Position numbers and translations under genes: made by a program | In this document: positions 14,732 through 39,451 of the stretch, one piece after another | How positions within the stretch are numbered: the first letter of the stretch is position 1 | Layout of the letters: every line of letters begins with the position of its first letter | Notes under the pieces: model-generated | The model's input: the letters and a program-made list of their open reading frames with translations, nothing else | What the model was told of the DNA's origin: nothing | Databases searched by the model: none | Origin: Lepidodermella squamata | Taxonomy: Eukaryota; Animalia; Gastrotricha | Length of the DNA: 64,000 nt | Reading direction: 5' to 3' | NCBI GenBank assembly: GCA_047495785.1 | Contig: JBLDXI010000032.1 | Coordinates: 4,154,001-4,218,000 of the forward strand

Positions 14732-14915
14732 AATTTCTAATAAAATAAGATAATTTAAGAGCGCAAGGTTATTATGTTTTGCCATTTTTGTAGTTTTTTC
14801 GAATGAATCTATAAATATCCTCCATTCATCAAATTTCGATCGATTGATCGCGTGCCGGCAAATTTCAACGTGAAGCAGATCCAGCAAATTTGATTTTTTT
14901 GTAGTCCATCAAAAA

Positions 14916-16376: not shown

Positions 16377-16528
16377 AAGGTCAAGATTCTAATATTTATT
16401 TCCAACTTTTAGGGCTGATTTCACAAATTATTGATTGACGGTGCCTAGCGAAAGTCAGCGATTTTGGTCTGTTTATTTATAATTGTTTATTCGGCTGACT
16501 TTAAGCTGATTTAAATTAGATTATCAGC

Positions 16529-17977
16529 ATGTATTATCGCCGATTTCCGCGATTCATTTTTTTCCCCGTTGTCCTCATCCTCTGTACAACGCTTCTTTAT
16601 TACAACGACCAAGGCCCGAATTTGTTTATCGACTGGCAAAGCCAAGAAGGCATGCTAATGAACTACACACAGTGTCGCGCCACTTTCAACGGCATAGTCA
16701 ATGAACGAAGGTTTTACGCTGTTATACCGGAAATTCCTTGGCCCGGTAACATTTTCGTTCGCATTACCAAATCCAAGAATGGTACGCTTCAACCGACCGT
16801 ATTCGTTGTTTTCATCACCATGTCGTTGGAGCTGGAAAAACGAAAAATCGGTCTGGCAGTTGGAATGAAATGGCAAATATTTGATAAATGGTTTCGCGAC
16901 GGCCAGTGGTCCATTTCCAGGTCGAATTTCACCGCGACCTGTCAAGCTGTGTTGGTGAATGGTACAACTGACATATTCAGGCAGGGCGCTGTCATTTCGT
17001 GCCCTGCATCTTTCGATCTGGTCGGCCCTGACCCAGATAAAAATGGCCTCGAGTTTACGTTGAAGAACGGCAATAGAGCCGAGTTCAATTCTTTAGCCCA
17101 CCAGCTTCCTTCTTGTAATTTGCCATTTCAAAGGCCAAGATATAGACTGGCGCTAACGACGTTAGTCGCAGATGAACAAATGGACCGGCTGCCCGAGTGG
17201 ATCGAATACCATCACATGGTCGGTTTCGAATATTTCGTTATCAACGTCAACCATAAATCGACTGTACGATATGAAAGAATGCTTGATGTCTACATAAATC
17301 AGTTGAAAATTGTCCAACTAGCGAATCATTATTCGGACGTGGTCGTCGACCGTCCAGGTCGCATATCGAAAATTGCCGCGGAATTGGACACATTGTGGCA
17401 GTTGAAAGGCCGAGCTGATTGGATGGCCTCGTTGGACGTCGATGAATTCATTCAGTTTTACCCGAGAACAAATTCTGAAAAAGCGGAGACATTGGTCGAC
17501 TTTCTGGACTCTATTCTAAAGAAATTTCCAACAACAGGTGGCGTTGAAATTCTAAACTATTTCTTCGGCTACGGACAACATCGGGCGCGGAGACGGTACT
17601 ACCCGGAGAAGGAAGACGATAAAGTTATTTTCTCGCGAATCAACGAAATGACTTGGCGCGCTGTGAACAAGTCAGTCGACCCGCCTAATTTGCACAGGAA
17701 AACTGTCGCTCGAGTTGACACCGCGTTGTATTTTGCGACTCATCGCGTCACGCTTGGCGGCACTGAGTACGTGGCTGATGCTGAGCGCGACGTTCGGCTG
17801 GCTCATTTTCGAACACCTTACGACTCGTACTACAAAGAGGTCGGCTGGCAGTTCGACAAAGGCGTCGCTGTTCGCGATTACAGTATGAAGAACACGTTTG
17901 GAGAAATAATCAAAAGCCGGCTGATTTCGCGCGGCTTTGTCATAAATGAAACTAAATATTTCGAGCCGGATTTGTGA
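16529..17977 (+). CDS. GT92-like glycosyltransferase, subtype B, intronless
   Basis: N-terminal TM; EWIEYH, KIAAELDT, DVDEF; close paralog of 13295-14731. Confidence 0.85.
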   Translation: MYYRRFPRFIFFPVVLILCTTLLYYNDQGPNLFIDWQSQEGMLMNYTQCRATFNGIVNERRFYAVIPEIPWPGNIFVRITKSKNGTLQPTVFVVFITMSLELEKRKIGLAVGMKWQIFDKWFRDGQWSISRSNFTATCQAVLVNGTTDIFRQGAVISCPASFDLVGPDPDKNGLEFTLKNGNRAEFNSLAHQLPSCNLPFQRPRYRLALTTLVADEQMDRLPEWIEYHHMVGFEYFVINVNHKSTVRYERMLDVYINQLKIVQLANHYSDVVVDRPGRISKIAAELDTLWQLKGRADWMASLDVDEFIQFYPRTNSEKAETLVDFLDSILKKFPTTGGVEILNYFFGYGQHRARRRYYPEKEDDKVIFSRINEMTWRAVNKSVDPPNLHRKTVARVDTALYFATHRVTLGGTEYVADAERDVRLAHFRTPYDSYYKEVGWQFDKGVAVRDYSMKNTFGEIIKSRLISRGFVINETKYFEPDL

Positions 17978-18424
17978 GGCTTCCAATAATTGAATGAGAA
18001 TTGCTGCTAAATTAGTTATTGGTAAATTATGAATAAAAACCACCAACGATGAAAAACATGCGGGTTTTATAAAGCCTTAATTTTATTGAATTTAACATCT
18101 TCCGCTATGGAGAAAGTAGCTAGTTTGGCCTAGTCGATCCTCGTCCCTTGTCACGCCGAACATCGTCTTATAAATCGGGTAATGAACCAATGACTGCGAG
18201 AATTCGTCACCCTTACACTCAACGCCACCAATTGTGAACATTTTTCATTTTGATTAGCCAGGTACTTGTGAATGGCGAACTGTTGAATAGCCTAGCAAGC
18301 ATGTCCACAAGCATATCCAACATTGGATCCTATTACTGAATGAATAGACGTAAATTGTGAGCACGTGCCCCGATGAAAATAGTGATCAACAAATCTTCGT
18401 GCCGCCGTCAATTATAATTTTGAA

Positions 18425-19891
18425 ATGAAAGATTTGCACGATTTGCAAGATAACAAAATTAAGGATCGCTCGCCGCCTGCGGCTTGGAAATGTCTCATAG
18501 GTGGCGTTATAGCAATTCTTATAATACTCGAATGCCTCCAACTTCGTTTGAACAATTCTATTCCTTATTACCACCCTGCCGGAATATCTAATGCTAACCA
18601 GAGCTTGTCATTTCGAAGCTGTCGAATGTTGTACTACCAAAAAATTACCGAGCAGCATCATTATTTGACTCGGCCAGAAACGCCCTTGCCAAGCAGTATT
18701 TTTACGAGGAAAATCAATTCGTCCCATACTTCAGCTTTCATCGTTTTATCTACCTTGATTTTCTATGATGTCGGGCCGAGTCGTGGCGTAAAAGCCATGT
18801 TCAAGTCCATCTACCCTACTTGGTTGTCCGAAAAATCTTGGTCAATCGGAGACGATTCAAATTTTACCAGGAGCTGTAAACTTATTACACGGAATGGAGT
18901 TGCGGATAGGCTGCAATTTGTCGCTGTTCTCGAATGCAATCTTGGCGAATACGACCCTAAAAATGGGCAATTAATGACAATCAGAGCCCTCGATCCTAGG
19001 AAGAAAAGTCTGGTTTTCAACGCACCGGATCTACCAGCTTGCCAGCTAGAAATTCCCAAACCTTATTACCGACTAGCAGCAACTACTATGGTGGCGGAAG
19101 ATCACATCGACCGAATTCCGGAGTGGATCGAGTATCATCATTTAATCGGCTTCGAATTTTTCGTAATTTACGTCAATCACAACTCGACGAGCCGCTTCGA
19201 AAAAATGCTTGATGTCTACATTAAGCAGTTGAAAATTGTCGAGATTTCGATTTACTACAACGACTACGTCACATCGATAAATCGAAATTACCTTTCACAG
19301 CTTCCTAGTATTCAGGATTGTTTGTACCAGTTGAAAGGCCGGGCCAAGTGGTTGGCTGTTTTTGACGTGGACGAATTCATTCAATTTTACCCGGAAACGA
19401 ATTCAGAGAAAGCAGCGAGTCTTGTTGAATACCTGGACTCGCTTCACCGAAAATCGCCAAAATTAGGCGGGGTTCAATTTTCGAACTGGTACTTCGGCTT
19501 TGGACCAGGCGCTATTCCGTCTCGATTCGAACCTAATCGAACTGATGATCGGTTGATTTTACCCCGAATAAATTCAATGACATATCGAAGAAAAAAGCAG
19601 ACTCGTGATCCGCCGAACGTGAGGCGGAAAACGATATCACTCATCGACAACGTTGCCTATTTAGCTGTGCATATAATAATGAATGGAGGCAAGCCGCACT
19701 GGGCTTCGTCGGCTAGCGATGGCAGGCTTATTCATTATCGGACACCTTACACTGGCAGTGGCCAGGAATTCATCGATGGCAAAGCGCCACGTGACTTATC
19801 GATGGCTGAAAAATACGGCAAAATAATTGAAAATAATCTTCTCTCACGTGGATTTATCATTGTAAACCAAACTCTCCATTTACAGAAATAA
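18425..19891 (+). CDS. GT92-like glycosyltransferase, subtype A, intronless
   Basis: N-terminal TM; EWIEYH, QLPSIQDC, DVDEF. Confidence 0.85.
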   Translation: MKDLHDLQDNKIKDRSPPAAWKCLIGGVIAILIILECLQLRLNNSIPYYHPAGISNANQSLSFRSCRMLYYQKITEQHHYLTRPETPLPSSIFTRKINSSHTSAFIVLSTLIFYDVGPSRGVKAMFKSIYPTWLSEKSWSIGDDSNFTRSCKLITRNGVADRLQFVAVLECNLGEYDPKNGQLMTIRALDPRKKSLVFNAPDLPACQLEIPKPYYRLAATTMVAEDHIDRIPEWIEYHHLIGFEFFVIYVNHNSTSRFEKMLDVYIKQLKIVEISIYYNDYVTSINRNYLSQLPSIQDCLYQLKGRAKWLAVFDVDEFIQFYPETNSEKAASLVEYLDSLHRKSPKLGGVQFSNWYFGFGPGAIPSRFEPNRTDDRLILPRINSMTYRRKKQTRDPPNVRRKTISLIDNVAYLAVHIIMNGGKPHWASSASDGRLIHYRTPYTGSGQEFIDGKAPRDLSMAEKYGKIIENNLLSRGFIIVNQTLHLQK

Positions 19892-20893: not shown

Positions 20894-21568
20894 TCATCTC
20901 GGTGGCTTAGAAATGGGTGTTGAATCGTTCGAAGAATGAAGTTTCACAAGTTTAGACTCGTAATTATCTCTCGCACCCTGAACCAGATCGATGAAGAGTG
21001 GTATCAAAAATGCGAAAACGATCAAAAAAATGATGCATATGCCGATTTGTATGAACTGCGAAGGCGTGCAACATGCCAGGTGACCGCGGGCGAGTGTTGT
21101 ATAGTACTGGTTATTCATAACCATTTGACTGAGCCTCGCGCCCAGCGGAGCGTGACCCTGCGAGTAGCTGCGACTCTGCGGCCGTCGATTTGAGGTCGGC
21201 CGACCTGGCACTGCCACCATCGGGATGCTAATAGCTGCTGAGTTCATATTCGCACCTTGTACCATGGGAATTGCGTACAGTAGCAGAGCCGCATCTACGT
21301 TGCGATCAATCGTTGATTCGCTTTTTCGTTTATGGCCTCTCGACTTTTTGCCATGATGCTTTTCCCTGTGCTTCGGCTTGAGCTTCGCCTTGTCGATAGG
21401 CGGCGCCTCGTCGTTTGCCTTCGATAGGCCCTGCTCGCTCGATGGTTCTTCGACGGTCAGCGCTATCACTGCCTGATCTTCGATATCAGCATATAGATTC
21501 CCAACTCTTTTGGAGTAATTGTTGCCTTGCAAGTTGTCATTCTGCTCCGGGTAGGAATGTTTAGGCAT
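20894..21568 (-). CDS. Disordered protein with C-terminal TM anchor (array member 1)
   Basis: 224 aa intronless ORF; TM FIQIGICIIFLIVFAFLIPLFI. Confidence 0.75.
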   Translation of the reverse strand: MPKHSYPEQNDNLQGNNYSKRVGNLYADIEDQAVIALTVEEPSSEQGLSKANDEAPPIDKAKLKPKHREKHHGKKSRGHKRKSESTIDRNVDAALLLYAIPMVQGANMNSAAISIPMVAVPGRPTSNRRPQSRSYSQGHAPLGARLSQMVMNNQYYTTLARGHLACCTPSQFIQIGICIIFLIVFAFLIPLFIDLVQGARDNYESKLVKLHSSNDSTPISKPPR

Positions 21569-21920
21569 ATAAAGGTTATAAAGCTACGTGTATCAGTCAA
21601 TATATAGGTAATGCTTTTGATAGTGAGTGCTAGCTGAACCTCGAATTCTTGCGACGTAGAAGACCTGTCGTGCGGATGATTAATGACAAATCTGCACTAA
21701 TCAATATTGATCTGTGAGTTGCCCCGGATAACCTCGAATCGCGCGAATAAAAGACTTAAACATTTCAGTAATTTTAACGGACAGGAAGCAGCTTTTTATG
21801 AGCGATAATTAGTGTACAACATGAAATTTGTTTTGACCAGAAAATTACGACTGGAAATGCGTTTTTTTATTATTAAATTTGGAGCATTTTTTGGCTTTTC
21901 ATCTTCTGATATAAAATGAT

Positions 21921-22646
21921 TTAGTTTATGATAACGCCATTAATGTCGTGGATAGTCTTGACGTTGCTTCCAAACAAGGCGTAGAATTGAACAATAATAA
22001 GGATAGCAGGTATTGAGACGCAGGCAAGCAGGATGGCGAGGACGTAGCCGATAAATCGAAGCCGTGATCGCATCGGAGCGTCGCCGAGAGAAAACGAGCT
22101 GCCTCTTCTGCACGCGAAATAACCCTTTGATCGCTGCTCGCCAAGCTCACTCCGACTCCGAGCTGAGCACATCGCGCAGATAAACGAACGATTCGCTGGG
22201 ACATTTTGATTGAAATCGCCTTTAATTGCTGGTTGCTTTGTTGGCTTCTCGACTACCTGCTGTGATACTAAGGATGAATTCTCAGTCATCACAGATTTAC
22301 AGGAGGTTTTAAAATTGAACAGGTCATCGCGAGTTTTTTGCCGCTGGCTAGTAATATCAGGGCTGATGCTGCCGTAGTAGGCTTTGTTGTCGAATCCGCC
22401 GCCGACGCCTACGAACTTCGCGAGTGGGACAGCTTTTCGGGTGGATAATGGCGTGATGACGGTTGTGAACGAGCTGACATCAGTGGACATGCCCAGATCT
22501 TCATCGCTGGGCAGAATATCGGAGAATTCCGCGTCGACCATGTCCAAATCAAGAGATGAACCGAACGCGCAGGCAGCAGCAGCAGTGCGACGGCTCATCA
22601 ATGCATCGGCGCAATTACGCGAATTATTTGAAGCGGAAAACAGCAT
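21921..22646 (-). CDS. Disordered protein with C-terminal TM anchor (member 2)
   Basis: 241 aa; TM FIGYVLAILLACVSIPAILIIV. Confidence 0.75.
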   Translation of the reverse strand: MLFSASNNSRNCADALMSRRTAAAACAFGSSLDLDMVDAEFSDILPSDEDLGMSTDVSSFTTVITPLSTRKAVPLAKFVGVGGGFDNKAYYGSISPDITSQRQKTRDDLFNFKTSCKSVMTENSSLVSQQVVEKPTKQPAIKGDFNQNVPANRSFICAMCSARSRSELGEQRSKGYFACRRGSSFSLGDAPMRSRLRFIGYVLAILLACVSIPAILIIVQFYALFGSNVKTIHDINGVIIN

Positions 22647-23463
22647 GTCTGCATAGTGCGGCGAATAATCCTACATTTTTATTATTCGTAAAAAAATACG
22701 ATGACCATCATACGCAAATAAAAATTGAGTTGGATTGAAGTCCATGAGTGGGACTTATATATGTATAGAGTAAAGAAGAATAAAGAGCATTCGATAGTAT
22801 ATTCCACCTTAAATTATATTACCATAAAGCATAAAAAGCACTCGCACTTGAGATCTAGTTTTAGATATACTTAGATAGATTGGGCTATTATTCTGAAACG
22901 CGACATCAGCTTGAGCAGTAAAAAGGGCGTCCTTTATCCTATTGCAGTTGAACAGTTTCAATAATAGGAAGCATATTACTCAGAGAGCGCTGTTGTCGTC
23001 TAACTTTTGTTTTCCTATTCGACGAAAATTAATTTTTGTGCTGAAAACACCGGCGCTATTTACGGCGTATTGATCATTTTTGTTTTTATCGAAACTCTCA
23101 CCTTGATGGCGCTTCCTCAATGGCGCTTTGTTGTTTTTCGCTCCCTTTGGCAGCAATTTAAAGTCGCGCATTAACGCGCCAATAATTCATAGCGTCACCT
23201 GTTTGACTTATCGATAGGTCAACAAAACAGAGGTTTCACTCCTATATACAGTTTAGCCTTCCTAAATTTCCGTCAAATGTGACAGACTGAGATACTTATG
23301 GGTGAATTTTAGGTAAAAAGAAAAAGAACCAATCGACTGATTCGCGTTTTTATTTAATACGAAAGATTCATGTTTACGCCGCCTTAATTGGTTTAAAAAT
23401 CGTGTACATTTGATTGTTGATATCGATTTTTATCAATTTTCTATTTTCCAATTTAAACTCTCT

Positions 23464-23922
23464 TCAATGAACTAAAATCAAAATGACAATAAGAAAAAGA
23501 AGAGTAGCAAGCAAAACTCTTAGCGAGTAACGGATGAAAGCTCCTAATTCTAGGACGTCGTCATCGATGTTTAGTTGTTGTTGTTTTTTACTCGCGGCCT
23601 TCTCCATCGCCGACAGCGGAACAATCACGGCGCAGCTAATTTCCTCCTTAAGGTAGTTCGGAAGCGTCACAAACGTGTCCACCTTTTTATCACTAGGCGA
23701 AGGCGTCTCGCTTTCTTTGCTTGGCATCGATGAGATTTCCTCGCACTCGATCACAGGAGACAGAATGTCGACCTGATTAGTTCGGCCTGTTTTGACCAAA
23801 AGCGACGCAGGTCTCTGAACTGCGCTGATTGGTTCGACGAACAGGCCAGGGTCGTCTTCTAGACTCGACACAGGCGCGATCTTTCCATTCGTTTTGAACG
23901 GTATTTTCGAGTAAAATCGCAT
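23464..23922 (-). CDS. Tail-anchored protein (member 3)
   Basis: ATG at 23922 (alternative 23982); TM VLLATLLFLIVILILV at the extreme C-terminus; similar to member 4. Confidence 0.75.
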   Translation of the reverse strand: MRFYSKIPFKTNGKIAPVSSLEDDPGLFVEPISAVQRPASLLVKTGRTNQVDILSPVIECEEISSMPSKESETPSPSDKKVDTFVTLPNYLKEEISCAVIVPLSAMEKAASKKQQQLNIDDDVLELGAFIRYSLRVLLATLLFLIVILILVH

Positions 23923-24429
23923 TATCGACTTATTTGATAAAATATTCTGAAAAATGGCCCATTCTGATCTTGAGATATGCATAAATAACATTCGCAAAAA
24001 CTTGTAATGACTATAGTGTAATAAAACAGCGATTTGGGAGCTTATAACGAGAGCGCGTGAAGGAAATTAAATACCGATCAAATTTGAATGCCAAAAAATC
24101 AGGAAACAATTTGTCGGGGAATCCCCTCTGAAAGCTTGAATAAAGAAGAACAAGAAATTAACTGCGGCAAAATAACAAATATTGACCCAAATTCACAGCT
24201 TCATAAGACAGCGAACTGCGAGAATGCGGTCGTTCCGCCTCATCTTTCCGCTCTATCGCGGCCTTATAAAAGACATGAAATTAGGAGTTAAAGTGATGAT
24301 GCCATACACCCATCAGGTGTCATTATCTATAAGATCCCACTATTTTCCGAATTAGAAGAATCGAGAAATTCAGTTTAATGTTTTATTTAAACCTCAAATT
24401 ATAAAAAATAGGGGACAAAACTGTCAAAT

Positions 24430-24948
24430 TCAGTTCCATTTAAAGAAAGTCTCTAGCAAAGATAGCCGCTTTTCGTCCGCATCCTTGAAAGTGATGATGA
24501 AAATCGGCGCAATGAGTAGAACGAGGGTGACGAGGAGAACACACAGCGCAAAGCGAACACACGGCCCAAGGTCAAGTATGCCGTCATCCTCATCAGCAAT
24601 AGGTTCGCGGCTGAAAATTCTCATGACCCGCATAGAAATTCGCCGGCTGATGTTCGATGTTGAATTGACACTGTTGCGCTGACTAAGGGCGGTTTTGGCA
24701 CCACCAGCTGATGATGTAGCATCGGCCATGTTGATTGATATCGACGGTTCAGCTTCGCTACATTCGATCAACGGCGACATAATGGCGACATCAACGTCTT
24801 GAACTCGAACCATAAGTGTAGCAGGTCTTTTCGAGCTATTATCATCGGGAAATGGCGGGACGTAGTAATTCAACTCGGCTCGATTGATGGAAGAGACCGA
24901 GTTCGAAGATAAGGCGGTCTTGCCTTTCTCTGTGCGATTTGACTTCAT
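24430..24948 (-). CDS. Tail-anchored protein (member 4)
   Basis: 172 aa; TM CVRFALCVLLVTLVLLIAPIFII. Confidence 0.8.
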   Translation of the reverse strand: MKSNRTEKGKTALSSNSVSSINRAELNYYVPPFPDDNSSKRPATLMVRVQDVDVAIMSPLIECSEAEPSISINMADATSSAGGAKTALSQRNSVNSTSNISRRISMRVMRIFSREPIADEDDGILDLGPCVRFALCVLLVTLVLLIAPIFIITFKDADEKRLSLLETFFKWN

Positions 24949-25903
24949 TTTCGATAAGTATTCTAAAAAATCGAAACGGAAAAGGAATGAATTTATATGA
25001 TTTCTTAGAAAATGGGCAGCCCGACTAATATCCTGTCCACTTGAGTCCTGTTTCAGGTATCGCCCTAAAAGACATTCAACTATCTTAGTATACTATATAG
25101 AAGTGTTCAATGATAGCGGTAAAATGGGCAAGAATCCTCTCAAAACAAAGGCATGTCCTAAAAATAGTTGAACAAACTAAACTTGCACGCTTATTTCTTC
25201 GAACTCGCCGGATTTTTATTAGCGACGATTATCCGGAAGGATTTAATCAAGGCTGCACTCTGCAAATAATACCTACTTGACGAGTCGGCCCACATTAAAT
25301 AGTAGAAAATCCGTGTTAGCAAAGATAATAGACAGATAATAGATGTTTTAAATTCAGCCTGAAATAGATTGGGTCAGACGCTAGCAATTTAAATCGCTGA
25401 AATGTTTTGAAATTCATGGTTGATCGATTTCATAAAATTGCTTATTACAAATTTTGCCACTTAATTTCTCTCTAGACTGATTTCTCGATAGGTTTCCCGC
25501 CAAAATGCCGACGCTCTGAATCCTAGATTCTAAATGAGCCACCAGATTTATTGCGATGGATTAATTAACGACATCTCGCTATATTGAGGATTGCCAGGTT
25601 TTACTTAAATTGATACCCAAGTTTCGATTCATGAGCTGATAAATAAAGGGATTAGAACTTCGAAATTATAGTCTCCGGTCATATACTTTAGCACTGATAA
25701 TTAAAAGAACCCACTCAAGTTCACGTCCTTGATTACAGCTATATTAAAACTTTACAACGAAGTCCTCTTATTAAATGAAAGTGACATGGATCCACATCGG
25801 AACCTGGTTTTTCGATCGAAAACGTTACTGATATTCGAGAAGACTAAAAATCGGAGAAACCTCAAAAAATCATCGATGTTTTATTAAAATTCAAATCACA
25901 TAA

Positions 25904-26509
25904 TCACAGACTTCCATTCAAGATGCTGAACGAATCAACGAACGATAGTGCTATTGGCACTGATAAAACCAGAAAAATTACGAGAAAAATCAGCACCATT
26001 ATCCGGGTATAAATTGTCATGGCTGACTTTTTCGCTGGCTTCGCAGCTTTTGACGATAGCTCGTACATGCCCTCTACTGTTACGACAGTCGACTTGTTGT
26101 TGCTTGGGACAGCCAGCGGTAAAGAGCCGGACCGCAGGGACGATGCACTGCCCAATTGCTTGCTGCTGCCGAATAAGGCGTGGACTGACGCTTTGTCATC
26201 TTTGATGAACGAATCTCGATGCTTCTCGTTGATTATGAAACCGCCATCGAAAACCTCTCGGTCCGATTCAGCCTCGTCGATGTCGCCAAGGTCGATCTCA
26301 ACAATGCGCTCGCCGCGGTCTACGCTAGGCATACTGACAGCCGACAACTTACGGGTAGCTTTTCCGTCAATCTCCGTGACAATTATGATCGGCCGAATGA
26401 AGTTAACTGGTGATTCAAGCATTGAACTTGCTGTCGGCGACGAGTTGAACTCATCTTCGTCCACCTTAACCGCTTCAAGGGCAAGATATTGCGGTGGCTT
26501 AGTTGTCAT
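25904..26509 (-). CDS. Tail-anchored protein (member 5)
   Basis: ATG at 26509; TM IMVLIFLVIFLVLSVPIALSFV; PPQY and PIIIVT motifs. Confidence 0.8.
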   Translation of the reverse strand: MTTKPPQYLALEAVKVDEDEFNSSPTASSMLESPVNFIRPIIIVTEIDGKATRKLSAVSMPSVDRGERIVEIDLGDIDEAESDREVFDGGFIINEKHRDSFIKDDKASVHALFGSSKQLGSASSLRSGSLPLAVPSNNKSTVVTVEGMYELSSKAAKPAKKSAMTIYTRIMVLIFLVIFLVLSVPIALSFVDSFSILNGSL

Positions 26510-27099
26510 TTTTAGCAAGTAAATTCTAGCAGGAAAAACGAATTATATGTTAGACAATTCAAAGTTTTGAGTGACTAGTTCACGACAATCTTCTGTTTTC
26601 ACATCGGATCAGAGACACAGAAGTCTTCGTGTGATAGCGTAGGTCAACTCCCGTGACGCAGGATTCACCTCTTGAGCTTTCGTGGTTTGATTTTTATTTA
26701 ATCGTGGTTTCATCAAATCAAAGGAAAATAAAGAATTAATTTTAAAAAAAACTGAAAACTGCCGAAGAATTAGAAGTGTTTGTAGAAAAAATTCAATTTT
26801 AGCGCCGGGTCTTACATGAATATTTCCAAGTTTCATCTCACTATATCGCCAGGTTGTGTCCCCGACATTTACAGCTAAAAAATGAAAAGAGCCTTATCTC
26901 TGCTCTAATCATTTCGCCCAGAATAATCGAACATCTGTAAATCTCATTATTTTAGCATTGACCTCCTTATCAGCGACGTAATAATTAGCCCTTGTGGTGA
27001 AGGAATCGAACAAATTCATGTACCTAAACACGCACTTCAATATTTATTCGAGCGCAAAAATGTTATAAAATTGCGAATGATTTGCGATAAAAATAACAA

Positions 27100-27558
27100 T
27101 CAGTTCAATGTCGTAGAGCTGTTTGTTCGTAGAACCGGTGATACCGTGGGTTCTGATGATGTCAGCAATTCGCTGTTTGCACTGTGATGTTTGTAAACTG
27201 TCCATGCGGTCGGAACGACTAGCATGAAAATGAAGACAACGGCAAGGAAAAGACAGAAGAAATTCTCGCAGCAAGAAAGCATCTTCGATTTCGGCCGTGA
27301 CGCGATGACTGTTAGCGACTTCCTCCGGGGCGATAAATTGCCTTTCTTACCGAAAATATACGAGTCATTCGATGACTTGCGTGACCCACATTCCAAGTCA
27401 CCGATCGCTGGAATATAACCAGCATTGCAGAATTCGTTGTAGTTGACGACGTAGCCACAGTTATTAGACAGGTAAAAGTAGCATTCAGAATCTGAACAGC
27501 GTCGATCGTTCAGATAGGGTTCTTCGAGGGTATACAATATAACGCTCTTGGCCACCAT
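27100..27558 (-). CDS. Protein with C-terminal TM anchor (member 6)
   Basis: ATG at 27558; TM FFCLFLAVVFIFMLVVPTAW. Confidence 0.7.
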   Translation of the reverse strand: MVAKSVILYTLEEPYLNDRRCSDSECYFYLSNNCGYVVNYNEFCNAGYIPAIGDLECGSRKSSNDSYIFGKKGNLSPRRKSLTVIASRPKSKMLSCCENFFCLFLAVVFIFMLVVPTAWTVYKHHSANSELLTSSEPTVSPVLRTNSSTTLN

Positions 27559-27949
27559 TTTGTTACCGACCGGAAACAATGATGAAAATTATATGTGATT
27601 TCGAACCATTTTCAGCAATAACATAAACACGTCTCGGCTTCATAAAAACTGTAAAGCCCCTGTTTTCTTGAAAAAACAAAAGCACTTATTTTTTTTTGTT
27701 TCAAAATTTGAAACTTGAATAATAAGGTACGACAGGATTAGCAAGGTGTTTTTTCATGTATCGATCGATTCCAATGAGCCTTGAGACAAAAAGAAGAAAA
27801 AAGTAATGGCAATTGTTAATTTTCTTGGAAATTAAATCCGCTATTCCGAGAATCCGCAAAAATCGATCGAGCCCAAAGTTTACATTATGAATAACAAAAT
27901 AATATAATTTCCCATTTTATTTCATCCTGATAGCGCAGGTGCAAAACAG

Positions 27950-28249
27950 CTAATAGATGCTCACTATTCGAAGTCGGACTAGTACCAGAGTGGTTGCGAT
28001 GGCAATCATCGCCAGAACAAATAGAGCGCAGACTACACAGCCTGTCAGCGTGAAACGATTCGATAATCTCTTTTCCGCCCTATTGTCTAATGTGTCGTGG
28101 GCCAGCAGCTTGGTTGCCTCGTCGGTGTAAACCAGCGGTATCAAGAGGCAGACGGAGGAAGAAGGACTCGTTAGAGAAGTTTCCTGCATGATTTCCGTCA
28201 AAGTCAAACGGATATTTGATGGGCTAGTCGTTTTCTCGGCCGATCCCAT
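27950..28249 (-). CDS. Tail-anchored protein (member 7)
   Basis: 99 aa; TM CVVCALFVLAMIAIATTLVLV. Confidence 0.65.
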   Translation of the reverse strand: MGSAEKTTSPSNIRLTLTEIMQETSLTSPSSSVCLLIPLVYTDEATKLLAHDTLDNRAEKRLSNRFTLTGCVVCALFVLAMIAIATTLVLVRLRIVSIY

Positions 28250-28731
28250 ATCGCAGGTTTTTACAGGTAATAAAATATTGGCAGGTTAAATGCTTTGATT
28301 TTAAATTACTCTGCTAATGATCAAAACATCGGCCTTCATAATATAGCCCGATACCTCTGCAATATATTATTTGCAAATGAATGGCTTTACGGCTTTACGT
28401 GGGTATTTACTGTTTGTGAACAGCTTCTGCTGACGCCGCTTTATCTTGCAAAACAGCTGAAATTGTTTTTATGCTCGAATTTCGTGTCGATTATCTTACA
28501 GATTTCTATTTAATTATTGTTTCATCCGAGTCGCGTGACAAATGAAAGCCGTCATGGTAAAAAAAACACATCGGCAAAAGGTGTGGGTAATATGCCCATT
28601 AGAGACATTCGCAAAAAAATTATTTATTGCCGTAAATGAACACGAAGCCATAATACTACGCAGGCAAAATTCATAAATTGGGACATTATTGCGCCTTTTT
28701 ACACTGCTGATGCAACATCCTAGACCGCATT

Positions 28732-29067
28732 CTATATGCGTTCATGATAAAAGATGAGGACGGCTAGCAAAGTAACGAGAAGTAGGATGCCTATAATTAC
28801 GAAAGTAGCTAACAACATGAATAAGAGCAGCTTCGCCGGTGTCGATTCGCTGCATCTCTTCAAAATTTCGGACTTGTTGTTCAATGCATAGCTCAGCTCG
28901 GCAGCTGTTGGAACATCGACAACGCCGGCTTCTTCATCGTCGCTCGGTGAGTCCGTCGTAAATACGGCGGTGTGGTAGCCTTCGAGCTTGAAAGTGACAC
29001 TCTTACAGCTTGATGATGTTGGCGAAAGTTTCAACAGGCCGCCTTCGATTTCCGTCGGCGATATCAT
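28732..29067 (-). CDS. Tail-anchored protein (member 8)
   Basis: 111 aa; long TM LLLFMLLATFVIIGILLLVTLLAVLIFY; GLLK and KSVTF motifs. Confidence 0.7.
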   Translation of the reverse strand: MISPTEIEGGLLKLSPTSSSCKSVTFKLEGYHTAVFTTDSPSDDEEAGVVDVPTAAELSYALNNKSEILKRCSESTPAKLLLFMLLATFVIIGILLLVTLLAVLIFYHERI

Positions 29068-29285
29068 ATTGCTAAAAACGCAAATTCAAGTGGAAAAAAT
29101 GAGTTATTGAAGTGGTTTTTTTCATGGCTAAAACCTTTGAATCCTTATTCAGATGTACGTTTACGGGGGTTTCATCGCCAATAACGAATTTTCTCTAGCT
29201 GACCAGAGGATGACGCAGATTCTGTCAAAATCTTCTTTTATTCTGGACAAAACGTAGTATATATCAGTTTCATCCACGCCAAATG

Positions 29286-29837
29286 CTAATAGGGCTTCTT
29301 TTCATAAGCAATTTGAATGATTGTCAAAAGCAGCGGGATCAGCAGGATGAGGAACATGACGAAAAAAATGCAAAAGATGAACCTGATGTAGTAAGTTGAG
29401 TTTTTCCACAGTGTCGATATGTTTTGCTGCTCGTCGGGTGGCTCGTCGAACTCGGCGAAATGATAGTGATTGCGGTTAGCACCCGACACCCGGTAGTAGC
29501 GTGGCTTCGAAACTGCCCGTTGGCCATTGCTGGCTAGGCTTGTCTTGTAATACGTTGTCGATTTTCGCCGCTCCTCCGTTACAACCACGATAGAATGTTT
29601 CGGCGGAATATCCTCGATAGAAATGATCTCATTGCTGCTGGTATTTGACTCATTCGCTGACGTAGTGGACGCTTTGACAGCAGCGCCATAAGACTGAGGT
29701 TTGTCGCCTATTTTCAGACCATCCTCGCTATCGAGAAGCGCATCGTTAGATGTGCAGTCCTGATTCTCGACCACACCAGTTCTATCAAAAACCGCCGTCT
29801 CATTGCCTTCAAAGCAATGCTTAGCCCAACTGGTCAT
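29286..29837 (-). CDS. Tail-anchored protein (member 9)
   Basis: ATG at 29837; TM FIFCIFFVMFLILLIPLLLTII. Confidence 0.8.
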   Translation of the reverse strand: MTSWAKHCFEGNETAVFDRTGVVENQDCTSNDALLDSEDGLKIGDKPQSYGAAVKASTTSANESNTSSNEIISIEDIPPKHSIVVVTEERRKSTTYYKTSLASNGQRAVSKPRYYRVSGANRNHYHFAEFDEPPDEQQNISTLWKNSTYYIRFIFCIFFVMFLILLIPLLLTIIQIAYEKKPY

Positions 29838-30585
29838 CACTTGTGCCAATAACAGTGTCTAAAACAAAATTTCCAATTCGAGCGAGTTTGCAGATTTCCC
29901 TACTTCCTATAATTTTTCACGAGGACACACATGACACATGTAAGTAAAGACAATTATTAAGGCTGCGGCTCCAATCAATAAACCGCGAAAGAATGGTTGG
30001 GGAAAATGATAGCAGAAAGAAAAAATCTTGAGAATGGCATGGGGCTTGACAACAATTAAGTTCAAACCAAGTTGAAAAGCTCCTCGAGAACTCATCGAAT
30101 GTTGGTTCAACAGCTGTGCTAAGCTATCGGAAAAAAGAATTTGACGCAATAACCTTGCATACCTTATGAGCGCGAATAAAATATCAAATTGCTGATAGAG
30201 TACGCATTTTTCCGGCGTTCCATACAATTTAAAGTCAGGTTCGAACAACCAGGTGACTCGGAAGCGCCTGTTCTCAGCCAAAGGTGCGCTTTCAGCTTTT
30301 CAGACGCGCGGTGTCGGCTTTGAAACGTCTATCAGGAAAGAATACACTCCCCCGGCGAAGTTGGGAATAGCGTCAAATTTACATTCACTTATCTTCTTAG
30401 TGCTTGTCTATTTCATTATTTTTCGAATAATCGATCAAATTTTCATCCGTCTAATTCCCAGGCCAAGTTGCCACAAGTCATAAAAGGATTAATTATAATC
30501 AGCGAAATTCAGAACATGACCGCCGACCTGATTATTCATCATCATCCTCATTTATTTTATTTCGAACAATCATTTAACGAGTTCA

Positions 30586-30999
30586 TCAATTAGACAACTT
30601 TGCCGCTTGCTGTTGGCGATGGTAAATTGATAAGAACAGTAGTAGAAGAATTACAAGTAGCATGATCATTAAGGTTCCGAGGGCGAATTTGACCCAAGTT
30701 TTCATTGAATCTGGAGCCTTGATCTGGTTGCCTAGCAGCGGCGCCTCGGAGCCAACCGGGGTCTGCCTCACCGGCTTACCAGCGGCTTCGACCTCTTGTT
30801 GTCTGAGAAACTCCTGGTAGTCGTTTTTGCCCGGCGAAAGCACTTCGACGGCTATCAACTCGCCAGGGTGAGACATCGACTCCTTGAGGGCAGCCTTTTT
30901 AGTGCCATTGTTTTTCGCAATCTCCTGGCCAACTGGCGAAAGCTCGAGCCGACCTGGTTTCGGCGGCTTCTGTTGCAAAGGCTGCATTTCACGGCTCAT
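30586..30999 (-). CDS. Tail-anchored protein (member 10)
   Basis: 137 aa; TM FALGTLMIMLLVILLLLFLSIY. Confidence 0.8.
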   Translation of the reverse strand: MSREMQPLQQKPPKPGRLELSPVGQEIAKNNGTKKAALKESMSHPGELIAVEVLSPGKNDYQEFLRQQEVEAAGKPVRQTPVGSEAPLLGNQIKAPDSMKTWVKFALGTLMIMLLVILLLLFLSIYHRQQQAAKLSN

Positions 31000-32106
31000 C
31001 GGCAGGTTAGAGAGTAATCAAAAGTAAATTCATCGACAAGAAAAAGTACTTTTGGGAAAAATTGTCTGTAACCTTTTTTCTATGTGTGCTCAGCGTAACT
31101 AAATGGATCGATATATTAAAGCGCAGCCGTCAAGTTAATTAGATTTTCTGCGTAAAATTTCCAGGTAATCGAATGCGATCAGACGATTTCTTAGTGGCTA
31201 CACGTGTATGCTGTAATTTGCCGCTGACACATTTCAGCTATTTGGCTCGCTGATCAAGCAAAAATATAGAACAGCATCAATAAATCAATAAAATCAAATT
31301 AAAACTGATTTGCATTGTTATTCATCACAAGTGCGCAAAATTATGATTTGGATAACACCCGGACAACCGACGTCATCCTGATGATTGAAATCGACAGCTG
31401 TATCTCTGACGACAACCGACATATAGGAGATACAAAAAAGTGAATCAACCTGCAGTTGAATATAGATCAAATATACTTGGCAACGAGGGATTGCGACTTA
31501 TATCTCATAATAATTTTTCTCCAGTATCTCGTTAAAATCCTACATTACTCTTTACATATTTCCAGTCAGCTTTGCCGGCATAAGCTGGCTTTGACTGAAA
31601 CATGATCCGTCATGATGGAAACAAAATTTAAATCTCGTTATAATCGAAGATGGAAATTGTATAATTTTGCTGTTAATCTATGCCTTTTTCCATATTAGCG
31701 CTAAATTCGGACAAAAGTTCTCCTCACCTTTCAATCCGATGTGAACTTGACTTAAGAAACGGCTTCAGATATTCCAAATTTCAGCGGATGTTATAAGAAT
31801 TAAGGAAAAAGAAAGGAATTCGCACGAAAAACGAAGCCTGATGATTGTTTGTAAAATTGAAAATTATGTAATAAAAAATCCGCAAAATGTCTCGCCAATC
31901 ACATGTTTGACCCGAAAAACAGATTTCTCAATTTCTGCTGAAAGAATTTGAGTGGCTTCTGTGGTTTTTCATGCCACCCCGTCAGCAAATCTAATTTTCC
32001 CTCTTACAAGATGACGATTCGTTCTCAGGTTAATTTATTTTGATTTTATCAGTGTGAACTGTGAACAAACATGAAAAATTCCTTGAAAGCAATAGGTTCC
32101 CGAGCT

Positions 32107-32802
32107 TCAAATTAATCGGCCCGATCGAGCTACAGCAATAGCGATCGGGAATAGAAATATCGCCAGTGTGATAACTAGGACACAAAGACTGAATTTAACG
32201 CAAGACGAAATGGGCAACGTTTGACCAGCATTTATCACCCCTCCTCGGCCGTCCTCGAGCAGATTGACCCGTAGTAGAGCGGCCGTTGATGAAGCTGGGG
32301 ATAAACACATTTTATCACTGCTCATCGGCGAATATACGCTGTTTTGCTGGCTGATTGGCATCATCACACCGTAGCTAGCAGTAGTCTGATAATAAGCGTT
32401 ACTCGGGGTGAATGATAGCAGCTGTTGTTGATAGTTATTATTTTCAGCCATCGGCTTCGCTGGTGGTTGCTGAGCTTCGTAAGCTGGCGGCGATCCAGGC
32501 GTGGTTGGCTGATTTTCGTCTACATTGAACGTAACGCCCCTCGTCGAGCCAGTCGACGCGACGTCAGCCTTGTCCAGATTTTCGGAACTGCCTCGCGGTT
32601 GCTTCAAAATGCCGCTGCCATTCGGAGACAACGCGCCACCGCCGACCGCCACCGATTTCGTCTTGCATAGCTTCGCCTTCTCGTTGCTCGCATCGTTCGG
32701 GTCAAGGCAAGTCGCGGTTGATGATAACTGCCGTTGAACAGCCCTTCTCGCTGGTTTTTTAGTGCTCCAAGGCGAAACTTTCAACACAAGTAACGACGCC
32801 AT
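32107..32802 (-). CDS. Tail-anchored protein (member 11)
   Basis: 231 aa; TM CVKFSLCVLVITLAIFLFPIAIAV; GILK, RGVTF and PPAY motifs. Confidence 0.8.
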   Translation of the reverse strand: MASLLVLKVSPWSTKKPARRAVQRQLSSTATCLDPNDASNEKAKLCKTKSVAVGGGALSPNGSGILKQPRGSSENLDKADVASTGSTRGVTFNVDENQPTTPGSPPAYEAQQPPAKPMAENNNYQQQLLSFTPSNAYYQTTASYGVMMPISQQNSVYSPMSSDKMCLSPASSTAALLRVNLLEDGRGGVINAGQTLPISSCVKFSLCVLVITLAIFLFPIAIAVARSGRLI

Positions 32803-36873: not shown

Positions 36874-39232
36874 ATGATGAGGGAATGGTTGTTAAATTTT
36901 CCTATTAAAGCATCAGTTCTCGTAGTCATCTATCTTCTTGTCGATGGTATTTCTGGACAATCTCAAAGGGTGACTACAACTGCATCGCCAGCGAAAAATG
37001 CGACTACAACCCGGCCTTTACGAATCGAGTACTATAGGAATGACCCAGAAAATTACTTGTGGCCCCTGCGCCGAGCTATTCCTTTCCGAATTAGCAGTTC
37101 AATATCTTCACGTAACCAAGTGCCAATAATAAGAAATTGTTTGATGACAATTCAAGCGGCAACGTGTCTGCGGTTCTCAGAGTGGAACAATCAGACGATG
37201 AATGAAACGACAACGGCTCACATTCATTTCATCACAGTGAAAGCTGATTTTTGCGACACTTCTCAGATTGGCTACCGGAAAAATGAACGAACCATCATTC
37301 GGTTGGGTCCGAACTGTTTCAACAGCTCAATCATCTACAAGCTGATTTTCCACGCTCTTGGCATGTTCAACGAGCATGTAAGTAAATGCTATTATCACTA
37401 TAAATTCGGCTGAGCTTAGCTCTGATCTAATGTTAAATGGGCGTTTCCTTATCATTAATTCACCCAACCAGAGTGCTCGAGTGGTTTAAGAGGTCAGACT
37501 TAAGATCTGATGGGAGTAATCCCGCGTGGGTTCGAACCCCACCTCTGGTAGAATATTTTTCGCACCAAATTCTAATATTTTTTCGTATTATTTTCTATGG
37601 CAGCAAAGGGGTGATCGAGATCAGTACATTTATGTCAACTACGAAAATATAATGCCGCGGTGTCGTCGCCCTGGCTTTGACATAATTCCGATGGACGAGC
37701 GCGTGTTGAATACGCGATATGACCTCAATTCGATCCTACACTGGGACAGTCGGTCTTGCGCTCGCTGGCCGAATGTCACGACAATGGAGGTGCTGAAACA
37801 ACCACACCGAGGTCTCGGCGGATCGACAGCTCCAACAGCCACCGACTACCAGAAGCTGACCAACGTCTACTGCAATGGATCGAGGCCGTTGGCGTGGCTC
37901 GTCGACCGCGACAACGCCGAACCGGTCGGAGTCCGTAGCTATGTTGCCGGCCATTTCACTATCAACTTGTGGCCGGACGGGGTGATACCCTACGTGATTG
38001 ACGAATCTTTCCTCAAATGGCAACAGAAGCGGTTAGAAAGCGCTATCAACTACATCAGCAACAAAACTTGCATCGAATTTAAAGCGGTAGTGGTGAAAAA
38101 TTCATTTTTTTGTTGATATTTTAAATTGTCCGTAAACTAGGTCACTTTTAAAGAAATCGACAGCGGCAAAGTGCCTGACTACGTCGAGTTCACGTACAAC
38201 CCTGATACGGATAACGACGGGTATAAAACCGACATTTACGGGTTCATTCCACGTATCGAACGGCGTCTTGTCGAATTTGGCGATGATACATTTGGCGAAG
38301 AAGGATCTTCGAAACTCATCTACTGGGCTTTGATGGCAATTGTTGGCATATTGCCAGAACACCGGCGACCTGACCGTGATGATTACATCACGATTAATTG
38401 GGACAACGTTGCCGATGGCGCTGAGTGGGCGTTCAAAGTGCTGGACAGGCCGTTTGATCGCCGAGTTTTGTGGACACCTTACGATATTAGGTCAATCATG
38501 CACCCGGCTGCCAATGCGTTTTCATCGAATTCGCGAAGTCTCGATACGATAGCAGCGAAAAAGCGCGGGTTACAAGATGAAGTCGGAAGTGCTGACTGGC
38601 CGACTCGTTGGGATCTGACGAAAATCGATAATCTATACTGTTACGGCGGCACTCTTTCGTCATCTCGGCCTGATTCGGCTACAACCACCCCTGTTTCGGA
38701 TGAAGGCGACGACTTTTACGATGAGTACGACTACGAAGATGACAACAAGCCAAGTAACTCGACTTCAACAGCGACTAGCATTGCGACGAGGGTCCCTATT
38801 AGGACAACAACTAAGGCTACCACTAAGACAGCTGATTACGAGGAGAACGAGAACGATGGCCCTACTACCAGAACTACTAGAGCGCCGTCCACTACTAGAA
38901 CTGCTCCAGCGCCGTCTACTACGGTAGCGCTCGTCCGATCTCAAAGCCTTCCGATCCCAAAGTTGAATTTCACATTCCCACCCGGATTCGATTTAGGATC
39001 TCTGACGAAATCTGATTCGACTACAACTGTCACGGTTGCCAAGAGAATGGACCCTATTGATGACGACGATGACGATGACGATGACGATGACGCCGATGCG
39101 CGGAAGAAGAAGCGAAAACGGCGGAATGATAAAGCCTCGAAGGCGAGGAGCGGTGTCGAGCAACTGTGCCAGCATTTTACTTTCATTCACGTCTGTTTCT
39201 CATCGCTCAGTCTCATCCAGTTGATCTACTGA
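36874..39232 (+). CDS. Double astacin-domain protein, both domains lacking the zinc motif; Thr-rich stalk and hydrophobic C-terminus; exons 36874-37377, 37604-38086, 38141-39232
   Basis: Signal peptide; LWP...IPF, TCLRF, EHQRGDRD, YDLNSILHW. Second domain LWPDGVIPY, EHRRPDRD, YDIRSIMHP. Confidence 0.85.
37467..37550 (+). tRNA. tRNA-Leu(TAA): tRNA-Leu (anticodon TAA)
   Basis: Acceptor stem ACCAGAG/CTCTGGT plus discriminator A; D stem CTC/GAG; anticodon arm TCAGA-CTTAAGA-TCTGA; long variable arm GGGA/TCCC; T arm GTGGG-TTCGAAC-CCCAC. Confidence 0.96.
37556..37560 (+). terminator. Pol III oligo-T terminator of tRNA-Leu
   Basis: T5 run 5 nt after the discriminator base. Confidence 0.7.
39059..39097 (+). 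repeat. (GAY)n coding repeat, poly-Asp
   Basis: gatgacgacgatgacgatgacgatgacgatgac encodes D11. Confidence 0.85.
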
Positions 39233-39451
39233 ATAAAATATGTTGTTCTTGCGTTTGAAATCGCGTGCTTAATTTCTGGGCTCACAAATTTTTATCGCAA
39301 TTTGAAAACAAAGCATTTAATTTCAATGCCCCGCCATTTTTATTCACAACTTCAACGGCTATTCGCCAACAAACAATTGTCTCTGGACTTTGTTGCTTGC
39401 ACTGAAAGCGAGAAGCCGCCTAGTGAAATAGCTGCTGATAAAGGAAATAAC

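Follow-up and report, generated by a model that had tools for sequence, protein, structure and literature searches.

A cluster of sixteen intron-free genes for putative tail-anchored membrane proteins in the gastrotrich Lepidodermella squamata

Results

Extent of the array

Do eleven small ORFs that follow one another on the minus strand of a Lepidodermella squamata contig belong to a single gene family, and what kind of protein would such a family encode? The analysed stretch (the window, 64,000 nucleotides of contig JBLDXI010000032.1) had been described in a first-pass annotation as carrying an array of 11 intronless genes for disordered, C-terminally membrane-anchored proteins. All eleven minus-strand ORFs were confirmed, each of 99–241 aa, at the following coordinates (helix formulae refer to the rule given in the section on the helix; poly(A) positions are counted past the stop; X1 is a probable RNA run, its RNA nature having been guessed):

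m1, 20894..21568, minus strand: 224 aa; helix at about 172–193, tail of about 31 aa; Q-x15-P in register, Asp in the outer part of the helix, LACC beside it; poly(A) signal at 67 nt.
m2, 21921..22646, minus strand: 241 aa; strict R-x15-P-x6-Q helix; RRGS 19 residues ahead of it; poly(A) signal at +50.
m3, 23464..23991, minus strand: 175 aa counted from the first ATG (an alternative ATG at 23922 gives a start resembling that of u1 and u2); helix in register without Pro, tail of one residue; covered by X1 contigs.
m4, 24430..24948, minus strand: 172 aa; strict R-x15-P-x6-K helix; PCVRF and RRIS motifs; covered by X1 contigs.
m5, 25904..26509, minus strand: 201 aa counted from the first ATG; strict R-x15-P-x6-D helix; covered by X1 contigs.
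m6, 27100..27558, minus strand: 152 aa; P-x6-K kept, inner half of the helix one residue longer, LSCC present; Cys-rich N-terminus with a predicted small beta module; X1 contigs span 27021–27565.
m7, 27950..28249, minus strand: 99 aa; family layout without the R-x15-P signature, doubtful member; X1 contig cover at 28001–28200.
m8, 28732..29067, minus strand: 111 aa; layout of the family but a longer hydrophobic run; signature absent, membership doubtful; KSVTF motif; thin X1 cover at 28801–29200.
m9, 29286..29837, minus strand: 183 aa counted from the first ATG; strict R-x15-P-x6-Q helix; IVVVTEE and RRKS motifs; poly(A) signal at +44.
m10, 30586..30999, minus strand: 137 aa; K-x22-H helix in register without Pro; poly(A) signal at +25.
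m11, 32107..32802, minus strand: 231 aa; strict K-x15-P-x6-R helix; SCVKF, PPAY and RGVTF motifs; poly(A) signal at +68.

The set of eleven is real but incomplete, as the putative family extends outside the window and comprises 16 genes in about 50 kb. Five further members (u1–u5) lie on the plus strand, opposite to m1–m11, 3–17 kb upstream of the window, so that the members are grouped together as two same-strand runs, and all 16 ORFs are intact. In a survey of ATG-started ORFs of at least 70 aa over 144 kb (60 kb upstream, the window and 20 kb downstream), a polar N-terminus with a single C-terminal helix was found in 14 of 218 ORFs, namely the 11 members and three just upstream, and in none of those in the remaining ~95 kb. 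The other two upstream members were added by profile search of the genome, a check suggested in the first-pass annotation, which detected no members outside this one locus.

Transcription and selection

The short, unstranded contigs of X1 were compared with six of the 16 genes. They occupied 16 of 19 ORF bins versus 1 of 11 intergenic bins (Fisher P = 9e-5), with 99.6% of the X1 depth within ORF bins; according to this probable RNA run, the six tested genes are transcribed. No splice-type joints were seen over these six genes in the X1 contigs, which are too thin to fix 5' ends, and several ATGs have possible splice acceptors 2–46 nt upstream. On the coding strand, a poly(A) signal was present at most 106 nt past the stop in every one of the 16 genes, versus 12% of random windows.

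Differences between the two haplotypes, taken from a listed subset and for m3–m5 only, amounted to 15 synonymous versus 7 non-synonymous changes (pN/pS ~0.14, binomial P = 1e-5), showing purifying selection on these three genes. Read on the minus strand, m5 presented 10 synonymous and 3 non-synonymous changes; m3 presented four of each, in addition to two 1-base indels at 23731 and 23736 that jointly restore the frame. The only long antisense ORF (26019–26522, over m5) is interrupted by a stop in the other haplotype. The array ORFs are thus separate intron-free genes, as had been proposed, and, according to the X1, poly(A) and haplotype data, neither exons of one spliced gene nor antisense shadows.

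Layout and geometry of the C-terminal helix

The hydropathy profiles agree in all 11 window members with the earlier description of one C-terminal helix, a short tail and no signal peptide. Each of m1–m11 has exactly one strong C-terminal hydrophobic segment (Kyte-Doolittle 19-residue mean 2.76–3.25), and over all 16 members a single 19-residue window reaches 2.29–3.25. In the rest of the proteins the maximum is 1.19, with neither a second helix nor signal-peptide hydrophobicity upstream of the anchor, and the tail after the helix measures 1–34 residues in 16/16.

The motifs listed in the first-pass annotation were all recovered: FIRY, CVRF, YIRF, WVKF, CVKF and RLRF ahead of the helix; a late helix Pro in seven of the eleven (m1, m2, m4, m5, m6, m9, m11); LACC, LSCC and GCVVC adjoining helices; and NDS, NGS and NSS in three tails. 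The use of these tail sequons as an argument for a luminal C-terminus did not hold, as they occur in 3 of 16 tails only and the N-terminal parts show no enrichment of N-x-S/T (26 vs 20 in shuffles, P = 0.08).

All members can be aligned in one helix register. The rule [R/K/Q]-x15-Pro-x6-polar, which places Arg, Lys or Gln at the inner edge and a polar residue immediately after the core, is strict in 10 of the 16; m1, m3 and m10 are in register as well, m6 is shifted by a single position, and the rule does not describe m7 or m8. In these 13 helices of the same register the core is 22 residues long (12 members) or 21 (m3), and Pro occupies the identical core position, 16, in 11 of them. Cys makes up 6.6% of the residues beside the helix versus 1.2% elsewhere, clustered on its N-terminal side, at the inner edge. 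Contrary to the first-pass annotation, the helix signature is absent from m7 and m8, which have the layout only. The idea of a family conserved in architecture rather than sequence captured the layout, but the alignments show that the sequence geometry of the helix is also conserved, and they reveal two clear sequence subfamilies.

Kinship within the array and N-terminal parts

Significant pairwise similarity was confined to these subfamilies, m3/m4/m11/u1/u2 (m3-m4, E 3e-10; m4-m11, E 6e-7; also m4-u2 and u1-u2) and u3/u4/u5 (E down to 2e-12). When one subfamily was compared with the other by hhalign, the same register was obtained without significance (E 0.012, probability 3.6%), homology between them resting on the helix alone. 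The other eight members, m1, m2 and m5–m10, are linked to the rest only through layout or helix register, and m7 and m8, for which layout is the sole link, are doubtful family members.

No alignment of the N-terminal parts spans all members, much as had been noted by eye, and an unbiased search revealed no significant motif common to all of them. Ser and Thr account for 10–28% of their residues. Contrary to the first description, they are not uniformly disordered or of low complexity: a charge-hydropathy plot classed only 5/16 as disordered. AlphaFold2 gave no secondary structure for residues 1–128 of m4 (pLDDT below ~52), followed by a helix at 129–171, whereas in single-sequence mode it predicted strands at residues 16–55 of m6 (pLDDT ~70–76), which may form a small, possibly folded beta module. 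Two short motifs were overrepresented, R-[RK]-x-[ST], corresponding to basophilic-kinase sites (11 observed vs 2.1 in shuffles), and a hydrophobic strand with acidic residues after it (6/16 members vs 0.8), both tested after the motifs were seen and with residue shuffles as the reference, in which natural local clustering is lost.

Search for relatives

The first-pass annotation recognised no described family, and our searches agree: no relatives were detected in Pfam, PDB, word searches, a 1.84-billion-protein profile search or metagenome scans, in databases that hold no close relative of this animal. This sparse coverage is illustrated by a neighbouring astacin, whose database matches do not exceed 39% identity, and because of it the label "lineage-specific" cannot be judged. 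Tail-anchored families in Pfam or PDB showed no sequence relation to the array proteins. In the language-model Atlas, clusters with SLC3A2_N and CLLAC were nearest to m6 (0.88 and 0.82) and an SLC3A2_N cluster came eighth for m4 (0.80), all below the 0.9 that would make them more than a lead; neither domain (PF16028, PF15675) was found in any of the 16 proteins by hmmscan at E up to 1, and the ranking probably reflects the layout of a polar stretch plus one helix.

Discussion

In our judgement the locus probably, though by no means certainly, holds one tandemly duplicated family of 16 genes for tail-anchored membrane proteins, 11 in the window and five upstream on the other strand. Tail-anchored proteins carry a single helix near the C-terminus that emerges only after termination, with a tail of roughly 40 residues at most. 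The 16 proteins have one such helix and a tail within this limit, in accordance with the layout first described, and no signal-peptide-like core follows their N-termini, X1 being too thin to exclude upstream coding exons. Sec61-beta, cytochrome b5, SNAREs, BNIP3/NIX and yeast Frt1/Frt2 are alike in the single helix within ~35 residues of the C-terminus, in the absent signal peptide and in the cytosolic N-terminal part that the array proteins would share. Unlike them, the array has no SNARE, BH, heme-binding or other cytosolic domain, and it consists of sixteen paralogues at one locus sharing an R-x15-P-x6-polar helix. If this reading is right, the sequences would represent an undescribed family inside a well-known class.

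Since the helix would leave the ribosome only after termination, insertion is expected to be post-translational, probably through GET3/TRC40, as suggested by the position and hydrophobicity of the helix and by a GET3/ArsA-type ATPase gene encoded in this genome (E 1e-101). The hydrophobicity of the Sec61-beta helix, 2.05, has been proposed as the dividing line for TRC40 dependence (PMC6633398), and all the array helices (2.29–3.25) lie above it. The long N-terminal part would then face the cytosol, to which the enriched kinase-type sites and the Cys on the N-terminal side of the helix point indirectly. The conserved kinked helix with its small residues would be the working core, setting targeting and probably packing against itself or a membrane partner common to the family, and the juxtamembrane Cys may be palmitoylated. 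Short motifs, for which the kinase-type sites and the strand with acidic residues are candidates, would lie in the cytosolic part, mostly unstructured and quick to diverge, and would give each paralogue different cytosolic proteins to recruit or to be controlled by.

An unlikely alternative is a mixed cluster, in which two or three small genuine families (m3/m4/m11/u1/u2, u3/u4/u5 and perhaps m1/m2/m9) have as neighbours unrelated genes for small membrane proteins (m7, m8, maybe m6 and m10), all looking alike because any single-pass C-terminal anchor does. It would explain why pairwise similarity stays inside two subfamilies, the low hhalign probability between them, the missing signature in m7 and m8, the one-residue shift in m6 and the lack of a motif common to the N-terminal parts. 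Against it stand 13 helices in one register, 11 of them with Pro at the same position, the near-constant core length (22 residues in 12, 21 in m3), the absence of the layout from other ORFs in the surrounding 95 kb and the gathering of all members in two same-strand runs; duplication in tandem, with rapid divergence afterwards, is a simpler explanation.

Nor do we favour, as very unlikely, type I mucin-like surface glycoproteins with a missed upstream signal-peptide exon, the Ser/Thr-rich part outside and the tail inside. The Ser+Thr content, the 26 sequons, the possible acceptors ahead of several ATGs and the thin X1 contigs at the 5' ends would suit such proteins, but the sequons are not enriched over shuffles, kinase sites are enriched, Cys clusters N-terminal of the helix, a basic residue marks that same edge, and X1 shows no splice joints; moreover, an ATG opens each ORF just behind its acceptor, as would be expected of an acceptor used in trans-splicing or lying in the 5' UTR rather than of one in coding sequence. 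It is scarcely credible that the ORFs are non-functional, whether as degenerating copies, as ORFs newly arisen de novo or as shadows of opposite-strand transcripts. In spite of the short proteins of simple composition, the lack of relatives in the databases searched and the unstranded X1, this explanation is largely refuted for m3–m5 by the pN/pS of 0.14 in the minus-strand frames, the segregating antisense stop and the frame-restoring indels of m3, and it further conflicts with coding-strand poly(A) signals after 16/16 stops, 16 intact ORFs and one Pro position kept amid diverged surroundings.

If the single-family, tail-anchored reading is true, selection would keep the geometry of a membrane helix constant (basic residue at the inner edge, core of 22 residues, Pro at core position 16) while the remainder of the protein diverges past recognition. 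Such families are test cases for roles of transmembrane helices beyond anchoring and for the diversification of unstructured cytosolic regions after duplication. The locus also provides an annotated, partly validated gene family for Gastrotricha, a phylum with almost no molecular biology; its importance is limited because tandem families without known relatives are frequent in animals with sparse sampling and no specific process is indicated.

Several known systems resemble the array in part. SNARE proteins have a heptad-repeat helical motif just ahead of the anchor; the array proteins gave no Pfam SNARE/syntaxin match, and the m4 model has no helix before residue 129. In KASH-domain proteins a conserved luminal peptide of ~30 residues, with PPPX at its end, comes after the anchor; the array tails, variable in length, have no common motif, and only the end of m1, KPPR, is loosely similar. 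The regulins (phospholamban, sarcolipin, DWORF, sarcolamban) are tail-anchored peptides under ~60 aa whose helix binds the SERCA pump. Phospholamban carries an R-R-x-S kinase site near the membrane on the cytosolic side and DWORF a helix-kinking Pro, both with likenesses in the array, where the C-terminal helix is likewise proposed as the conserved working part; the array proteins, of 99–241 aa, have no sequence similarity to regulins and no Pfam match at E up to 1. As a long shot, the kinked helix, with small residues on one face, could be a membrane-embedded ligand of one shared pump, channel or insertase, the 16 paralogues being gastrotrich-specific regulin-like modulators whose variable cytosolic parts, bearing R-R-x-S sites close to the membrane, would bring that machine under different kinase or partner control from cell to cell; a partner pump is, by this analogy, pure conjecture.

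The vertebrate lymphocyte adaptors LAT, PAG, NTAL and LIME are single-pass proteins with palmitoylated juxtamembrane Cys and a long unstructured cytosolic part with short phospho-motifs. Their order is a short outer N-terminus, the helix, a juxtamembrane CxxC and a long C-terminal cytosolic tail with Tyr motifs. The word adaptor in the first-pass annotation is a guess. The array proteins, in which the long part precedes the helix and which show no homology to these adaptors, are likewise single-pass with juxtamembrane Cys and would likewise have a long, mostly unstructured cytosolic part with short motifs, though the motifs of the lymphocyte adaptors are Tyr-based.

The locus and its members

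An array of 11 minus-strand ORFs with a C-terminal membrane helix had been described in the first-pass annotation; all 11 were present (m1 to m11; 99–241 aa, window 20894-32802, − strand), and the array could be extended by five more members upstream. Each m1–m11 protein showed one very hydrophobic window of 19 residues (Kyte-Doolittle mean 2.76–3.25), located 1–34 residues from the stop, the remainder of the protein reaching at most 1.19. The short motifs previously listed were all found. The survey of ORFs was carried out on a joined region of 144 kb (the window with 60 kb of upstream and 20 kb of downstream sequence), where a polar N-terminus followed by a single C-terminal helix was detected in only 14 of the 218 ORFs of ≥70 aa beginning with ATG. 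These corresponded to m1–m11 plus three + strand ORFs upstream of the window, and two additional upstream members were identified with a profile built on the helix region (alignment A3). The five upstream genes, with coordinates in the stretches L012 and L016, are the following:

L012:3286-3747, + strand, u1, upstream of the window
L016:532-870, + strand, u2, upstream of the window
L016:3713-4216, + strand, u4, upstream of the window
L016:4822-5214, + strand, u3, upstream of the window
L016:6390-6848, + strand, u5, upstream of the window

Together, u1–u5 occupy positions 4137286-4150848 of the contig (C32), on the + strand and thus opposite to m1–m11, and the 16 genes extend over C32:4137286-4186802 as two runs facing each other, with a LINE-type element, a Kelch gene and five GT92 glycosyltransferase genes between them. 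In the same coordinates, the window is C32:4154001-4218000. When the whole assembly (121 Mb, 151 contigs) was searched with profiles from the family alignments A1, A3 (the helix region) and A4, the 16 members were found at this single locus and no others were detected, the best match outside it having an E value of 0.7. In addition, tblastn of all members against the 144 kb revealed no decayed extra copies. A 124-aa ORF between m9 and m10 (29907-30281, − strand) has a hydrophobic C-terminal stretch, but its N-terminus is non-polar and it did not match the family profiles, so it was not counted. A candidate promoter motif common to the upstream 220 nt of the 16 genes was rejected (z about 2, scattered positions).

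The five GT92 genes are intron-free ORFs of ~480 aa arranged in tandem (window 11582-19891, + strand) between both runs of the family, and the PF01697 domain (glycosyltransferase family 92) was present in the three ORFs scanned. A LINE-type retrotransposon, apparently complete, is represented by an intact ORF of 969 aa (437-3346, + strand) that codes for endonuclease and reverse-transcriptase domains.

Helix register and probable unity of the family

Significant BLAST matches grouped m3, m4, m11, u1 and u2 (E from 3e-10 to about 2e-5) and, separately, u3, u4 and u5 (E down to 2e-12), and no significant pairwise match was found for the remaining eight members. When aligned, the C-terminal regions of these eight fell into a common register, in which a basic residue or Gln is followed by 15 residues, a Pro, 6 residues and a polar or charged residue. 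Ten members (u1–u5, m2, m4, m5, m9, and m11) showed the strict register. The m1 helix also follows it, its outer stretch containing one Asp, and those of m10 and m3 follow it without the Pro, the former with a 22-residue core and the latter with 21 residues before the protein ends. The m6 helix keeps P-x6-K with an inner side one residue longer, and the helices of m7 and m8 fall outside the register, their membership being doubtful. Two patterns of recurring small residues were noted by eye in the core, one in u3–u5 and m2 (positions 3, 7, and 11) and one in the m4 group (positions 2, 4, and 9), both resembling the kind of face used in helix packing.

That the cluster could be a mixture of unrelated small genes was considered, and the comparison of the two subfamilies by hhalign returned the same register with a non-significant match (E 0.012, probability 3.6%). 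However, the Pro occupies one position of the 22-residue core in eleven paralogues whose other regions cannot be aligned, which we take as evidence for common descent with selection acting on the helix. A less likely alternative is that the proteins are type I glycoproteins in which a signal-peptide exon had been missed. The hydropathy check found no signal-peptide-like core at the N-terminus of m1–m11, and N-x-S/T sequons were not enriched over residue shuffles in the family.

Evidence for separate and functional genes

Evidence bearing on a third alternative, non-functional ORFs, comes from two public sequencing runs that contain the stretch, both compared over 23201-29200 (m3–m8). Run X1, from 2015 and unstranded, was taken as RNA by guess; according to PMC11660948, only one adult transcriptome of L. 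squamata exists, and X1 is probably that one. Its contigs covered 16 of 19 ORF bins versus 1 of 11 intergenic bins (Fisher P = 9e-5), and the ORF bins held 99.6% of its depth. This confinement to the ORFs is an RNA-like pattern, unlike that of low-coverage DNA, with the intergenic bins acting as a silent control. The second run, X2, is evidently a DNA run on the sequenced animal and shows two haplotypes. Among the haplotype differences listed inside m3, m4, and m5, 15 of 22 were synonymous (expected share 0.235, P = 1e-5, pN/pS 0.14), and one of them introduces a stop in a 167-aa antisense ORF over m5, yet it is silent on the minus strand. In m3, two 1-base indels located five bases apart restore the frame. 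For m3–m5, these data largely exclude both non-functional ORFs and the possibility, raised in the first-pass annotation, that the ORFs are antisense shadows. A 1-base indel at 26517, immediately upstream of the ATG at 26509, favours this ATG as the start of m5. The RNA evidence thus covers 6 of the 16 genes and that of selection 3 of them.

The same annotation had contemplated that the ORFs might be exons of one spliced gene. No splice-type joints linking ORFs were found in the X1 contigs over m3–m8, and an AATAAA or ATTAAA signal lies 6–106 nt past the stop in 16/16 genes, compared with 12% of random windows of the same size, which marks the genes as separate units. The sole joints in X1 were strand-switching ones, about 85–135 nt apart, on all of its contigs over the ORFs (window 23442-29073). 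They are probably fold-back or amplification artefacts of an amplified cDNA library, and could mislead splice or antisense analyses of that run.

The two X2 haplotypes over 23201-29200 have depths of roughly 47 and 69 and diverge strongly in the stretches separating the genes (24039-24123, for instance, has 10 changes and 2 indels); therefore, the sequenced animal, or animal pool, is highly heterozygous here. In addition, pyrimidine-rich stretches ending in AG were found 2–46 nt before the ATGs of m2, m4, m5, m8, m9, u3, u4, and u5, being possible candidates for spliced-leader acceptors. The nematode SL1 leader was not found in the genome, and the animal is therefore not an SL1-using nematode.

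The N-terminal parts

No motif was significant against shuffles when the N-terminal parts of 14 members were searched without bias (OOPS EM, widths 6, 8, and 10), the top one, x-Y-Y-x-x-P-like, being equalled or exceeded in 5 of 100. Some short elements are retained within subfamilies: u1, u2, m4, and perhaps also m3 share L-[FY]-Y-K-V-P near the N-terminus, and u3 and u4 share a hydrophobic run with D-H after it. Two enrichments over residue shuffles, tested after the motifs had been seen and thus to be read as leads, were those of R-[RK]-x-[ST] (11 occurrences versus 2.1) and of a V/I/L-rich strand followed by two acidic residues (6/16 members versus 0.8). RVxF and LIR (2/16 each) were not enriched over the shuffles, and a strict PxIxIT was seen, by eye, in m5 alone; no specific docking motif is claimed. 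Over the 18 residues flanking the helix on its inner side, the cysteine content is 6.6%, compared with 1.2% elsewhere.

The N-terminal parts had been described as disordered. In agreement, residues 1–128 of m4 were predicted by AlphaFold2 (five-sequence alignment) to lack secondary structure (pLDDT 36–52), with a single helix at 129–171. However, the charge-hydropathy plot classed only 5/16 members as disordered, and the Cys-rich residues 16–55 of m6 (27100-27558, − strand), the sole member with a predicted fold, would form a beta module of three to four strands (AlphaFold2, single-sequence, pLDDT about 70–76), for which no PDB fold match was found. The claim was therefore overstated, and a fair description from these predictions would be that the N-terminal parts are mostly, and not uniformly, unstructured.

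Proposed mode of action

By definition, the helix of a tail-anchored protein cannot exit the ribosome before termination, and these proteins are inserted post-translationally with a cytosolic N-terminus. A helix located 1–34 residues from the stop would exit only after termination, which points to tail-anchored proteins. A core of 22 residues is longer than usual for helices resident in the ER, and suits post-ER membranes. Helix hydrophobicity ranges from 2.29 to 3.25 across the family, versus 2.05 for Sec61-beta, the value proposed as the dividing line for TRC40 dependence (quoted in PMC6633398). A gene for a GET3-type ATPase is encoded in the genome.

A cytosolic N-terminus would agree with the enriched kinase sites, the cysteines and the basic residue on the N-terminal side of the helix. 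Given these features and the tail anchor, the conserved helix may be read as the functional core, serving for targeting and lateral packing, its edge possibly palmitoylated, and the variable cytosolic part would carry short motifs for regulation or recruitment. The interest of the family lies chiefly in this fixed helix geometry as opposed to a free-running cytosolic part. The earlier interpretation was largely right, although overstated with respect to disorder, lineage specificity and function.

Relatives in databases

In line with the first-pass annotation, no described family was matched. Pfam gave nothing above noise for the 16 proteins, and the leads from the language-model Atlas, SLC3A2_N (PF16028) and CLLAC (PF15675), were not confirmed by hmmscan. 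No match was found by PDB sequence search or by exact look-ups of the window proteins, which excluded the records of this genome, and no relatives by word searches with m4 and with the u3–u5 profile, by two metagenome scans or, at E ≤0.001, by an exhaustive profile search with the family alignment A2 against 1.84 billion representative proteins. On the present reading, the genes form a new family within the already known class of tail-anchored proteins. The lack of relatives is weak evidence, because the databases gave no match above 39% identity even for a conserved enzyme, the neighbouring astacin. An astacin-domain ORF (38171-39232) is contained in a run of closely packed + strand ORFs (37526-40270), and a tRNA-Leu(UAA) gene (37467-37550, + strand) is located between this run and an ORF ending at 37413.
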